64,000 bases of DNA, taken from contig NIVC01000292.1 of assembly GCA_002269645.1 (NCBI GenBank), forward strand, positions 310,001-374,000. Direction: 5' to 3'. Each line of letters starts with the position of its first letter. Position 1 is the stretch's first letter. The notes beneath the pieces are model-generated. The model ran no database searches and was not told the origin of the DNA. It worked only from the letters and a program-made list of their open reading frames with translations. Origin of the DNA: Macrostomum lignano. Taxonomy: Eukaryota. Made by a program: the position numbers and the translations under genes. Below, in pieces: positions 57,754-63,700 of this stretch.

Positions 57754-60700
57754 TCAACTCTCTGTGAGGTCCAACAGCAGCGACTTCAGCATCCGCGCCT
57801 CGAAGGTGACCGAATTTCGGCCCGGATGCGGCTCCTTCTGCGCCAGCGGGTTCTCCACGTAGGCCTTGACTGTGTTGCCGTATCCTGCAGGTTGGGTTCG
57901 GATTGGGTTCGGGTTGGGTTCAGGTTAGGTTTAGATTGGGTTCAGATTGGGTTCCGGTTGAGTTAGAGCTGGGTTCAAGTTGGATTAGGGCTGGGTTCAG
58001 GTTGGGTTCAGATTTGGTTCAGGTTGGGTTCAGGTTTGGTTCAGGTTGGGTTCAGGTTTGGTTCAGGTTTGGGTTCAGGTTGGGTTCAGGTTTGGTTCAG
58101 GTTTGGGTTCAGATTGGGTTCAGATCGGGTTCAGGTTGGGTTCCGGTTGAGTTAGGGCTGGGTTCAGGTTGGATTAGGTTTGGGTTCAGGTTGGGTTTAG
58201 GTTGGGTTCAGGTTGGGTTTAGGTGATTTCAGGTTGGGTTTAGGTGATTTCAGGTTGGGTTTAGGTGATTTCAGGTTGGGTTCAGGTTGGGTTTAGGTGA
58301 TTTCAGGTTGGGTTCAGGTTGGGTTTAGGTGATTTCAGGTTGGGTTCAGGTTGGGTTCAGGATTGGGTTCGGGTTTTCCAACACGCCATTCGCAGAGCTC
58401 ACTCTCGCAGAGATCCAGAAACTTGAAGCAATCGTCCAGAACGCCGTCCTTCATCAGAATCATGTGCTTGGCCATGTTCTCCAGCAGCGACAGGAAGCAG
58501 CGCTTCGCATAGTACCAGGTGTCCGTGCCCAGCTTCTTCTGGTACGGCTCCATGCTTTTGATTATGCGGCTGATGCCGAACTCATAATTGCCCTTGGAGC
58601 AGTACAGGGTGCCGATGACAAGGTTCACGATGCACGAGTGGAAAATCTTCTTGTCCGGGTCTTCGTAAGCAATCTGTTGAGGTGTTGGAGAGGCAGATTC
58701 AATTACTGATGGAGCGAGAGCGAAGAGGCTGAATCAAGCACTGATCGATAGGCAGAATTAAGCACTGATGGAGTGGAGAGGCTGATTCAAGCACTGATGA
58801 AGCGGAGAGGCTGATTCAAGCACTGATAAAGCGAAGAGGCAGATTCAAGCACTGATGGAACGGAGAGGCAGATTCAAGCACTGATGGAGCAGAGAGGCTG
58901 ATTCAAGCACCGATGGAGCAGAGAGGCTGATTCAAGCACCGATGGAGCAGAGAGGCTGATTCAAGCACTGATGGAGCGGAGAGGCTGATTCAAGCACTGA
59001 TGAAGCGAAGAGGCAGATTCAAGCACTGATGGAGCGGAGAGGCTGATTCAAGCACTGATGGAGCGGAGAGGCTGATTCAAGCTCTGATGGAGCGGAGAGG
59101 CTGATTCAAGCACTGATGGAGCGGAGAGGCAGATTCAAGCACTGATGGAGCGGAGAGGCAGATTCAAGCACCGATGGAGCAGAGAGGCTGATTCAAGCAC
59201 TGATGGAGCGAAGAGGCTGATTCAAGCACCGATGGAGCAGAGAGGCTGATTCAAGCACTGATGGAGCGGAGAGGCAGATTCAAGCATTGATGGAGAGGCA
59301 GAATCAGAAGTTCCAACAAGCCTCAGATAATCTCACCGCTTCCTCCTCCTTCTCAATTTTCCTCATGAGCTCCTCCGCGTCCTCGTTCTGGTTGGTCATG
59401 ATGTAGGCCACGCACAGGTTGGCCAGCACCACAGCGCTCACGTTCAGGATGTGATCGTAGTGCTTCTTCACGATGGGCTCGTAGAAGCTGATGCTCTCCT
59501 TGAACTTGTCCCGCATGAACAGCACGTGAGCCACGTTCAGCTTCCAGGAGTCGTGATCGTTGCAGAACTCCACGGAGTTGCGGAAGATCTTCTCCACTTC
59601 GGGATAATTCTCGCGATCCCAGTAGATCTTGGCTTGCTGCATCAGGATGGGAATGTACTTCTCCAGGGCTGGAATTAGAATGGGAATTTGATTCTCCAGG
59701 GCTGGAATTAGAATGGGAATGTACTTCTCCAGGGCTGGAGTTAGAATGGGAATGTACTTCTCCAGGGCTGGAATTAGAATGGGAATGTACTTCTCCAGGG
59801 CTGGAATTAGAATGGGAATGTACTTCTCCAGGGCTGGAGTTAGAATGGGAATGTGATTCTCCAGGGCTGGAATTAGAATGGGAATGTACTTCTCCAGGGC
59901 TGGAGTTAGAATGGGAATGTACTTCTCCAGGGCTGGAATTAGAATGGGAATGTGATTCTCCAGGGCTGGAATTAGAATGGGAATGTACTTCTCCAGGGCT
60001 GGAATTAGAATGGGAATGTGATTCTCCAGGGCTGGAATTAGAATGGGAATGTACTTCTCCAGGGCTGGAATTAGAATGGGAATGTACTTCTCCAGGGCTG
60101 GAATTAGAATGGGAATGTACTTCTCCAGGGCTGGAGTTAGAATGGGAATGTGATTCTCCAGGGCTGGAATTAGAATGGGAATGTACTTCTCCAGGGCTGG
60201 AATTAGAATGGGAATGTACTTCTCCAGGGCTGGAATTAGAATGGGAATGTACTTCTCCAGGGCTGGAATTAGAATGGGAATGTACTTCTCCAGGGCTGGA
60301 ATTAGAATGGGAATGTACTTCTCCAGGGCTGGAATTAGAATGGGAATGTACTTCTCCAGGGCTGGAATTAGAATGGGAATGTACTTCTCCAGGGCTGGAA
60401 TTAGAATGGGAATGTACTTCTCCAGGGCTGGAGTTAGAATGGGAATGTACTTCTCCAGGGCTGGAATTAGAATGGGAATGTGATTCTCCAGGGCTGGAAT
60501 TAGAATGGGAATGTACTTCTCCAGGGCTGGAGTTAGAATGGGAATGTACTTCTCCAGGGCTGGAATTAGAATGGAAATGTACTTCTCCAGGGCTGGAATT
60601 AGAATGGGAATGTACTTCTCCAGGGCTGGAATTAGAATGGGAATGTACTTCTCCAGGGCTGGAATTAGAATGGGAATGTACTTCTCCAGGGATGGAATTA

Positions 60701-63700
60701 GAATGGGAATGTACTTCTCCAGGGCTGGAATTAGAATGGGAATGTACTTCTCCAGGGCTGGAATTAGAATGGGAATGTGATTCTCCAGGGCTGGAATTAG
60801 AATGGGAATGTACTTCTCCAGGGCTGGAATTAGAATGGGAATGTACTTCTCCAGGGCTGGAATTAGAATGGGAATGTACTTCTCCAGGGCTGGAATTAGA
60901 ATGGGAATGTACTTCTCCAGGGCTGGAATTAGAATGGGAATGTGATTCTCCAGGGCTGGAGTTAGAATAGGAATGTACTTCTCCAGGGCTGGAATTAGAA
61001 TGGAAATGTACTTCTCCAGGGCTGGAATTAGAATGGAAATGTACTTCTCCGGCGCTCCTCCGGGACTCCTACGTGATTTTTCTCCTCCTCTCTCAGAATC
61101 CGCTAACCTTCATCGTAGTCGTTAACCGCCTTCTTCACAGCCTCGTCTTCCTTCTTCTGGCGCGCCTGCTGCACCATCTTTGTGAGCTTTCGGAGTGTCT
61201 CAGTCTGTCTGCTGGCCATCTCCTCTAGTCGCCTGCAGATGGCAGTGTTGGGGATAGATAGATAGATAGATAGATGATAGATAGATAGATAGATGATAGA
61301 TAGATAGATAGATAGATAGATAGCTAGATGATAGATAGATAGATAGATAGATAGATAGATAGATAGATAGATAGATAGATCGATAGATGGATAGATAGAT
61401 AGATAGATAGATAGATGATAGATAGATAGATAGATGATAGATAGATAGATAGATAGATAGATAGCTAGATGATAGATAGATAGATAGATAGATAGATAGA
61501 TAGATAGATAGATAGATAGATAGATAGATAGATAGATAGATAGATCGATAGATGGATAGATAGATAGATAGATGATAGATAGATAGATAGATAGATAGAT
61601 AGATAGATAGATAGATAGATAGATAGATAGATAGATAGATAGATAGATAGATAGATAGATAGATAGATAGATAGATAGATAGATCGATAGATGGATAGAT
61701 AGATAGATAGATAGATGATAGATAGATAGATAGATGATAGATAGATAGATAGATAGATAGATCGATAGATGGATAGATAGATAGATAGATGATAGATAGA
61801 TAGATAGATAGATAGATAGATAGATGATAGATAGATAGATAGATGATAGATAGATAGATAGATGATAGATAGATAGCTAGATGATAGATAGATAGATAGA
61901 TAGATAGATAGATAGATAGATAGATAGATAGATAGATAGATAGATAGATAGATAGATAGATAGATAGATAGATAGATAGATAGATAGATAGATAGATAGA
62001 TAGATAGATAGATAGATAGATAGATAGATCGATAAATGGATAGATAGATAGATAGATGATAGATAGATAGATAGATAGATAGATAGATAGATAGATAGAT
62101 AGATAGATAGATAGATAGATAGATAGATAGATAGATAGATAGATAGATAGATAGATAGATAGATAGATAGATAGATAGATGATAGATAGATAGATAGATA
62201 GATAGATAGCTAGATGATAGATAGATAGATAGATAGATAGATAGATAGATAGATAGATAGATAGATAGATAGATAGATAGATAGATAGATAGATAGATAG
62301 ATAGATAGATAGATAGATAGATAGATAGATAGATAGATAGATAGATAGATAGATAGATAGATAGATAGATTGATTGATTGATGCCAGTCACCTGTAGGCC
62401 TCCTCAGGCGCTGTTTGGCACAGAATGACGGCCTCCAGGAAGTCCATCAGGTAGGGCGGCAGCAGCTTGAAGGCCTGCTCGGTGCTCTCGGCCAGCACGT
62501 CGGCGGCCAGGTCGTGGAAGTCGTGCTTGACGTACAGCAGCAGCAGGTTGCCCAGAGTCTCAGGCGGGAAGGACTCCTGCTGCATGAGGAACTGCAGCTT
62601 CTGGAAACCAGCTGAAGCGTCCGTTTCCATGCCAACGAGGCCCAGGTTGTGCAGTGTGACGGCGTCCAGCTCCTGCTCAGAGCGCGGAGGCATGTCGGTG
62701 AGGGCGTCCTGCGCCTGGGCGAAGTTGCGCCGGTTGAACTCGATGGCCGCCTTCAGGTTGAAGGCCTCCACCAGGGCGGTCTCGTGCAGCGTCAGGGAGT
62801 TGCCGACGCTGCGCACCTCGATGCCTTCGGTTGCCATACCAACGCCGAGCTCCGGATGCTCGCGGATGCCCCTCTCGATGATGTCAGCGATGAGCTTCAG
62901 GGCCTGGGCGTACTGGCGCAGTTGGTAATGGCAGACTGCCATGTTGTAGGCCAGGTCCGGGCGGAAGCTGGTCACCTGCGGCGGGAAAAGGCGGTGGTGG
63001 GGTGACCAGATTGGCTTACTGAAACTCTGGAGATAGTGAGGGAGGGCTTACTGAAACTCTGGAGATAGTGAGGGAGGGCTTAATGAAACTCTGGAGATAG
63101 TGAGGGAGAGCTTAATGAAACTCTGGAGATAGTGAGGGAGAGCTTAATGAAACTCTGGAGATAGTGAGGGAGGGCTTACTGAAACTCTGGAGATAGTGAG
63201 GGAGGGCTTACTGAAACTCTGGAGATAGTGAGGGAGGGCTTACTGAAACTCTGGAGATAGTGAGGGAGGGCTTACTGAAACTCTGGAGATAGTGAGGGAG
63301 GGCTTACTGAAACTCTGGAGATAGTGAGGGAGGGCTTACTGAAACTCTGGAGATAGTGAGGGAGGGCTTACTGAAACTCTGGAGATAGTGAGGGAGGGCT
63401 TACTGAAACTCTGGAGATAGTGAGGGAGGGCTTACTGAAACTCTGGAGATAGTGAGGGGCTTACTAAAACCCTGTAGATAAAGATAGTGATTGTTTACTC
63501 ACCTGCATAGCTTTGGTGAACTTGGCGCAGGCCTCCTGGTACTTGCCCTCCTTGAACAGCAGGCAGCCGAGGTTCACCTGCCTGTCCGGGTCGTCGGCCT
63601 GGCACTGGTCCACCAGCGCGCGGGCGCCGGTGAAGTCCTCCTCATCGTACTTGATTGCCGCCTCCAGCTTCAGCATCTGGCTTCGGTAGGCCGGCTCCTC

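Follow-up and report, generated by a model that had tools for sequence, protein, structure and literature searches.

A 42-unit minisatellite across an acceptor junction of an IFT70/TTC30 gene in Macrostomum lignano is probably neutral and removed with its intron

A 64-kb window of the Macrostomum lignano genome (the whole stretch analysed here, on Mlig_3_7 contig NIVC01000292.1) carries on its minus strand an IFT70/TTC30 gene whose fourth intron (61107-59669) houses a 33-bp tandem array that reiterates the 3' splice site. Our analysis indicates that the array is most probably a neutral, unstable variable number tandem repeat (VNTR) of the boundary-spanning, or "mirage", type, which lies in one near-identical copy of the gene and is removed with the intron. 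The founding event would have been a tandem duplication of 33 bp that took in a few bases from the end of the intron together with bases 1-28 of exon 5. Slippage or unequal exchange would then have expanded and homogenised the copies, as in the arrays that occupy almost every intron of the genome, and the authentic acceptor would have ended up with 41 near-exact pseudo-acceptors upstream of it. The array is probably without function, and since its unit is a multiple of three and free of stops, an occasional mis-choice of acceptor would be less harmful.

Seven exons of the gene were mapped, all of its introns are GT-AG, and the continuous 617-aa frame is identical to the protein model P0121. 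Animal IFT70 orthologs share 66-72% identity with the window protein, and the solved Chlamydomonas IFT70 structures 8bd7_C and 4uzy_A match at E ~1e-239 over residues 5-645, which bears out the gene assignment made in an earlier, sequence-only reading of this DNA. The AlphaFold 2 model of the protein is all-helical, with a mean predicted local distance difference test score (pLDDT) of 80.8, and fits the TPR solenoid of IFT70, an IFT-B subunit.

Tandem Repeats Finder placed the array at 59647-61050 (period 33 bp, 42.5 copies, 95% matches, 0% indels, score 2605); with its end copies it extends over 61056-59641 of the minus strand. Cut in register on that strand, it yields 42 units of ATTCTAATTCCAG|CCCTGGAGAAGTACATTCCC, with a junction every 33 nt from 61021 to 59668. 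The 41 extra junction copies, the first-to-last distance of 1353 nt (41 x 33) and the 86-nt intron that the first acceptor would give (61107-61022) are exactly as the sequence-only reading had counted them. Twenty-four of the 42 units are identical to the consensus, and the 41 full pseudo-junction units (59682-61034) deviate from it at 28 of 1353 positions (2.1%). The acceptor AG is kept in 40 of these 41; the loss that had been noticed near 60692 affects precisely one unit (60704-60672, CCAT|CCC, with T at 60692). CTAAC replaces CTAAT in 7 units, and AATCAC or AATCAA replaces AAGTAC in 8. The CTAAT motif does lie, as described, 7 nt before its own junction and 40 nt before the next. Exon 4 of the seven-exon model (61232-61108, 125 nt, ...AVNDYDE, 3' end GATGAAG, donor GT at 61107-61106) ends in phase 1, which puts every acceptor in frame. 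Each unit accordingly encodes ALEKYIPILIP, no variant contains a stop, and a model built from the first acceptor gains 451 aa and meets the terminal stop only, again in agreement with the sequence-only reading. Since the array lacks stops in two of three reading frames, an open frame by itself says little. Upstream of the repeats, intron 4 begins with a unique, purine-rich part (61057-61107, gttagcgg...cccggagg) that is 9 nt longer in the other two copies of the gene (extra gaggaggag).

The origin of the unit is recorded in the exon. Homology between unit and exon 5 reaches 28 nt into the exon (ATTCTAAT vs ATCCTGAT, 26 of 28 positions), a score reached by none of 2000 shuffles; the same alignment sets unit CCCTGGAGAAGTACATTCCCATTCTAAT against exon CCCTGGAGAAGTACATTCCCATCCTGAT. 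The branch-like CTAAT of the unit corresponds to an exonic CTGAT, and the homology to +28 aligns the unit peptide ALEKYIPILIP with ALEKYIPILMQ in the exon. After CCCTGGAGAAGTACATTCCC, the canonical exon reads ATCCTGATG (ATC), whereas the pseudo-units read ATTCTAA/ATTCTAAC (ATT). From this alignment, at least 28 of the 33 unit bases appear to be exon-derived, and the array reads as 43 copies of a segment from about -5 to +28. The description of the unit as 13 intron and 20 exon bases, offered by the sequence-only reading, therefore holds for position and fails for origin. Two origins are compatible with the sequence: duplication of -5 to +28, or an exon-only duplication of 32 nt, bounded by AGC microhomologies, that later gained 1 nt.

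The two ends of the array differ from its interior. Ahead of the first full unit lies a diverged 43rd partial copy, AG|CGCCGGAGAAGTACATTTCC (61056-61035), which is common to all three gene copies; it departs from the unit at 3 of 22 nt and is unrelated to it further upstream. At the other end, the terminal unit (59681-59641) bears the authentic acceptor (AG 59670-59669, exon start 59668), with exon nucleotides 1-28 homologous to the unit; the exon-side tail of this homology matches at 6 of 8 positions. Divergence is greatest in the two end copies, a pattern typical of homogenised minisatellites. No selection signal on the AG or on coding was detected in either direction (1 of 82 AG bases changed vs 2.1% overall; 7 non-synonymous vs 2 synonymous among distinct unit variants). 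Nor is a period that is a multiple of three significant, given a prior of 1/3 and periods of 32, 4, 29, 11, 22, 30, 20 and 16 in other arrays. We also observed that the CTAAC of 7 units (TTCTAAC) is nearer the yeast UACUAAC branch consensus than is the CTAAT before the authentic acceptor, so by this measure the pseudo-sites are not weaker than the real one.

Two further copies of the gene occur in the assembly, on NIVC01002442.1 (L001) and NIVC01002863.1 (L003), and are 99.1-100% identical to the window copy (L002) in every exon. They contain 11 and 10 junction units, respectively, against 42 in the window, with the same left flank and diverged first copy and with differing internal variant maps. 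Copy number varies among the three genes in all five intronic arrays compared (L001/L002/L003: 14.7/14.7/16.8 for the 32-bp array, 81/287/205 for ATCT, 11.5/42.5/10.5 for the 33-bp array, 12/20/10 for the 29-bp array and 47/45/52 for the 11-bp array). Such variation marks an ordinary VNTR and rules out an assembly artefact of one contig.

The evidence on splicing comes from gene models. The 90%-identity protein cluster contains six models (three from NCBI, one per gene copy, and three from UniRef, separate from the NCBI Mlig_3_7 models), and all of them join DYDE|ALEKYIPILMQQ at the last acceptor, where the 332-nt exon 5 begins (59668-59337, ALEKYIPILMQQAKIYW...EKEEEA). The NCBI annotation of Mlig_3_7 drew on STAR-mapped RNA-seq (StringTie/TACO) and a mapped de novo transcriptome (PMC5730564), and this RNA guidance means that transcripts from at least one of the three copies support the canonical junction. 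Public M. lignano RNA-seq sets named in PMC5730564 are SRP082513 and SRR2682326. The RNA-guided models indirectly indicate that the mature mRNA joins exon 4 to the last acceptor and that the whole array is removed as intron. In its structure the array resembles a mirage: it runs head to tail, its terminal unit holds the authentic boundary, its copy number is unstable, and its interior is homogenised while its ends have diverged.

How the last acceptor could be distinguished is constrained by the array itself. From about -33 to +20, 24 of the 42 acceptors are identical and the remainder differ at one to three positions, so local strength cannot separate the sites and only long-range context could. 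The exon-adjacent acceptor would then be chosen through exon context, which may include sequence beyond +28, enhancers or purine-rich elements, and the donor that lies 332 nt downstream. This proposal follows from the likeness of the acceptors and parallels human F7 and amphioxus, where the exon-adjacent copy is used. Two other mechanisms were considered and rejected. A ratchet point, as in long introns of Drosophila and vertebrates, needs AG|GUAAGU to regenerate a 5' splice site. The units read CAG|CCCTGG, and ligation to any of them yields GAAG|CCCUGG without a GU, which rules out the classical form of the recursive or stepwise re-splicing that the sequence-only reading had raised. NAGNAG-type wobble involves acceptors 3 nt apart that share one branch point and tract, whereas here they are 33 nt apart, each with its own upstream tract. 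Masking of pseudo-sites by RNA structure was not evident either: five units plus the exon start fold at z = -1.95, with UCCAG/CUGGAG pairing between units that does not single out the last acceptor.

Several considerations limit the case for removal of the whole array at its last acceptor. The gene models of all three copies may rest on transcripts of the short-array genes that also map to the 42-unit copy, and a short read needs at least 21 nt of overhang before a mapper can assign it to one of 42 identical acceptors. Annotation pipelines give one protein per gene, so that minor isoforms would go unseen. Both "first AG" scanning and intron-definition rules predict use of the first acceptor, and the exon-definition rationale for the last one is something we infer. 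No branch point can be assigned, as the A of CTAAT lies 6 nt from its own AG, and CAG (+6), GAG (+14) and AAG (+17) intervene before the AG of the next unit. The vertebrate AG-exclusion rule fits neither reading of CTAAT as a branch point. Finally, a search with exon 4 plus six units as the query retrieved no ALEKYIPILIP-repeat protein from 5.8e9 sequences, a weak negative, the same search having also missed P0001/P0121, which share 50 query residues. A second search, with a 132-aa protein query centred on the junction, brought back only orthologs, none above 80% identity, and no fragment derived from M. lignano cDNA.

A tentative possibility, compatible with a VNTR that is mostly spliced out, is that pseudo-acceptors see low-level real use, likeliest at the one or two nearest the true exon, to give minor isoforms with 11 or 22 additional residues (ALEKYIPILIP). 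The in-frame, stop-free units would let such mRNAs escape nonsense-mediated decay, and the identity of local acceptor sequence in 24 of 42 units is in keeping with their use. PMC1557585 describes constitutive use of the two nearest pseudo-donors in human IFI6 (6-16) and CBS. Against this, none of the six models includes an extra unit, the protein search, itself a weak negative, returned no such protein, and the F7, LMNB2, PDGF, amphioxus Adh3 and globin genes use the authentic site only. The insert would also land in a conserved helix: in the AlphaFold 2 model, the junction E404|A405 falls within one continuous helix (residues 392-422, pLDDT 84-91), and two prolines per 11-residue unit at this point would interrupt the TPR solenoid, which argues against long isoforms as a functional product. 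The broader proposal of the sequence-only reading, that splice choice could insert 0 to 41 repeats, is unsupported by the models and by the protein search.

It is unlikely, in our view, that the 42-unit copy is mis-spliced, poorly expressed or decaying, its neutral or slightly harmful expansion being tolerated through redundancy (two other copies and two paralog copies in DV1). Redundancy of this kind is available, with three copies 99-100% identical in their exons, two paralog loci and large duplicated blocks in the DV1 genome (PMC5730564), and the array here is 4 times longer than in the other copies. The window gene nevertheless has an intact frame and intact GT-AG sites throughout, differs by one amino acid from the other copies and bears no mark of a pseudogene. 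Among the SNPs that tell the copies apart is codon 497, in exon 5, which is AAC in the window copy as opposed to AGC (N497/S497).

Constitutive use of the first acceptor at 61021, which would place a 451-aa ALEKYIPILIP repeat domain in the IFT70 of the window copy, is very improbable. An 86-nt intron would suit intron definition and a nearest-acceptor rule, intron 1 being 85 nt, and the frame is open through all units. Yet the repeat is missing from all six models and was not retrieved by the protein search, and the insert would break the conserved helix. Unit number ranges 4-fold between near-identical genes, no plausible branch point lies within working distance of the first acceptor, and the 7 non-synonymous vs 2 synonymous variants, together with an equally open second frame, give no sign of coding constraint; we therefore rejected a coding tandem repeat domain. 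An assembly artefact in the array or in its length we regard as similarly improbable. The genome is rich in repeats and difficult to assemble, and older, noisy long reads went into it (PMC5730564), but three independent contigs show the same flanks with distinct internal variant maps, no indels occur among the units, and 1.4 kb is well inside long-read length.

The preferred account, a neutral boundary-spanning VNTR, can be set against the repeat content of the gene and genome. The share of tandem arrays is 65% in the gene span and 29.6% in the window (26 arrays of at least 200 bp), and simple and tandem repeats account for 15% of the M. lignano genome (PMC5730564). In a genome this rich in repeats, an array whose founding duplication straddled a junction is unsurprising. 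All five introns longer than 100 nt are dominated by different arrays, with periods of 32, 4, 33, 29 and 11, and of these the 33-bp array alone extends into an exon. On the minus strand, intron 2 contains a 32-bp minisatellite (63013-63480, 14.7 copies, 14 decoy YAG acceptors), intron 3 an (ATCT)n microsatellite (61253-62382), intron 5 a 29-bp minisatellite (58718-59295, 15 decoy YAG acceptors), and intron 6 an 11-bp minisatellite (57888-58375) that ends about 4 nt from the acceptor. The decoys of introns 2 and 5 are preceded by pyrimidine tracts as rich as those at authentic sites, and these 14 and 15 sites show that decoy acceptors are not special to intron 4. Exon homology, by comparison, is confined to the 33-bp array among the four tested (32, 33, 29 and 11 bp). 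A junction origin for the other three was rejected, as local alignments of their units to flanking exons were no better than shuffles (p = 0.27-0.98), with no flanking-exon homology in the intron 2 or intron 5 array.

A distant paralog, Mlig015039 (loci L004 and L005; paralog B below), has 84% amino acid identity and an intron at the same position and phase as intron 4, GACGAAG|gtgag...cccag|CTCTGGAG. That intron is filled by an unrelated 30-bp array confined to the intron, and unrelated arrays also occupy the paralog's introns in general (periods 22, 4, 30, 20 and 16). Introns 2 (63502-62976) and 3 (62391-61233) of the window gene have no counterpart in paralog B, in which the equivalents of exons 3 and 4 are contiguous (L004 5264/5265). 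Conversely, paralog B has an intron of its own at GIE|VRSV, almost wholly (AACT)n (L004 ~4444-4839), at a place where the window gene is uninterrupted. Open reading frame (ORF) fragments from other species (P0129-P0136) are uninterrupted at the intron 3 and intron 4 positions. The two ends of intron 3 carry a direct-repeat signature (ACAG|gtgactgg vs gCAG|GCGACTAG), which is weak because the shared intron 1 matches similarly. Judged from these comparisons, the paralog-specific introns suggest recent gain of microsatellite-filled introns. A more speculative and rather doubtful extension is that tandem arrays actively remodel M. lignano introns. The pyrimidine tract and CTAAT of the acceptor in use would then derive from duplicated coding sequence (TACATTCCCATCCTGAT), the boundary-spanning and (ATCT)n/(AACT)n introns would be snapshots of intron gain and acceptor replacement in progress, and the 40 pseudo-acceptors would occasionally give a ladder of IFT70 isoforms.

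The remaining exons of the gene lie on the minus strand at 63998-63801 (exon 1, cut by the window end), 63715-63503 (exon 2), 62975-62392 (exon 3), 58673-58403 (exon 6) and 57884-57754 (exon 7). Two UniRef models depart from this structure at other array-bearing introns. P0124 lacks 21 aa (VTSFRPDLAYNMAVCHYQLRQ), which fits an in-frame alternative acceptor, ...gcgccag|TACGCC, 63 nt into exon 3 (62975-62913), and P0125 has a frame-shifted C-terminus through a different intron 6 junction (58403-57884). These differences may be real isoforms or annotation errors.

Elsewhere in the window, an amine-oxidase-like gene (an ORF with GAGISGLAAA, minus strand) contains a 12-bp array at 49936-50180 that reads in frame as QEQP/QEQS just after the likely start codon, possibly a coding minisatellite. 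Further downstream in the same gene is a (GTCCC)n array of 127 copies (48666-49298, minus strand), open in several frames. Ahead of an intronless 537-aa cytochrome P450 ORF (53305-51695, minus strand), its C-terminal part is partially duplicated (EEVHRKSCLAPFGVFHRVTEDITVGG..., 54301-54017), probably as a truncated tandem pseudogene copy.

The array reveals neither a new mechanism nor a new protein. It does constitute a natural cis-competition for 3' splice-site choice, with 40 intact pseudo-acceptors upstream of the authentic site and gene copies of 10, 11 and 42 units that form a dosage series. If the last site is the sole one used, then local sequence, "first AG" and nearest-acceptor rules all fail, and exon context must explain the choice; M. 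lignano has transgenesis, so acceptor choice is testable there. With this case, a flatworm joins cephalochordates and humans as a host of mirage minisatellites, and something is added to the idea that introns change through tandem duplication at their boundaries. There is also a caution for practice: in the repeat-rich M. lignano genome, junctions can be misplaced by gene predictors and short-read aligners.

The sequence-only reading judged either outcome, variable insertion or acceptor skipping, to be unusual. With decoys also present in introns 2 and 5 and with precedents in F7, IFI6, CBS, LMNB2 and PDGF (PMC1557585) and in amphioxus (PMC3087553), this was overstated. In human F7, a 37-bp VNTR in intron 7 has its first unit across the exon 7-intron 7 boundary, and its 4-8 identical pseudo-donors are silent: only the exon-abutting copy is used, though the pseudo-sites are functional (PMC1557585). 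F7 and the flatworm gene alike reiterate an authentic splice site identically within a polymorphic minisatellite, a natural cis-competition, but F7 reiterates a donor 4-8 times and the flatworm array an acceptor 41 times. Applied to acceptors, the 5'-to-3' scanning that has been proposed for F7 would lead to use of the first copy instead of the last. Human LMNB2 and PDGF also use the authentic site only (PMC1557585). IFI6 has 25 pseudo-donors, of which the two nearest the authentic site are used, and CBS, with 15-20 repeats, behaves likewise (as summarised in PMC1557585). These genes share with the flatworm array many reiterated pseudo-sites, and their use of the nearest two is a precedent for variable inserts; unlike it, they are donor-side cases with transcript evidence of alternative use. 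An intron with many internal acceptor-like sites also recalls recursive splicing, but ratchet points differ from units that read AG|CCCUGG.

The closest likeness is to the amphioxus mirages, described for Adh3 and globin genes in PMC3087553. In amphioxus BflGb6, an intron's 3' end and the 5' portion of exon 2 are duplicated, haplotypes differ in copy number, and splicing is normal by reverse transcription PCR (RT-PCR) (PMC3087553). The flatworm array shares with these mirages units built of intron end and exon start, AG/GT sites that are mostly kept, variable copy number and terminal units excluded from homogenisation. It differs in its 33-bp unit (150-160 bp in the globin genes), its 42-43 copies (3-6 in amphioxus) and a unit length that is a multiple of three and stop-free, as well as in its flatworm host; regular splicing was seen by RT-PCR in amphioxus, whereas the flatworm junction is known from gene models. 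The array belongs to a known class, the boundary-spanning minisatellites, and what is new is the phylum, the pairing of an acceptor-side position with a very high number of copies, and a unit that stays in frame.

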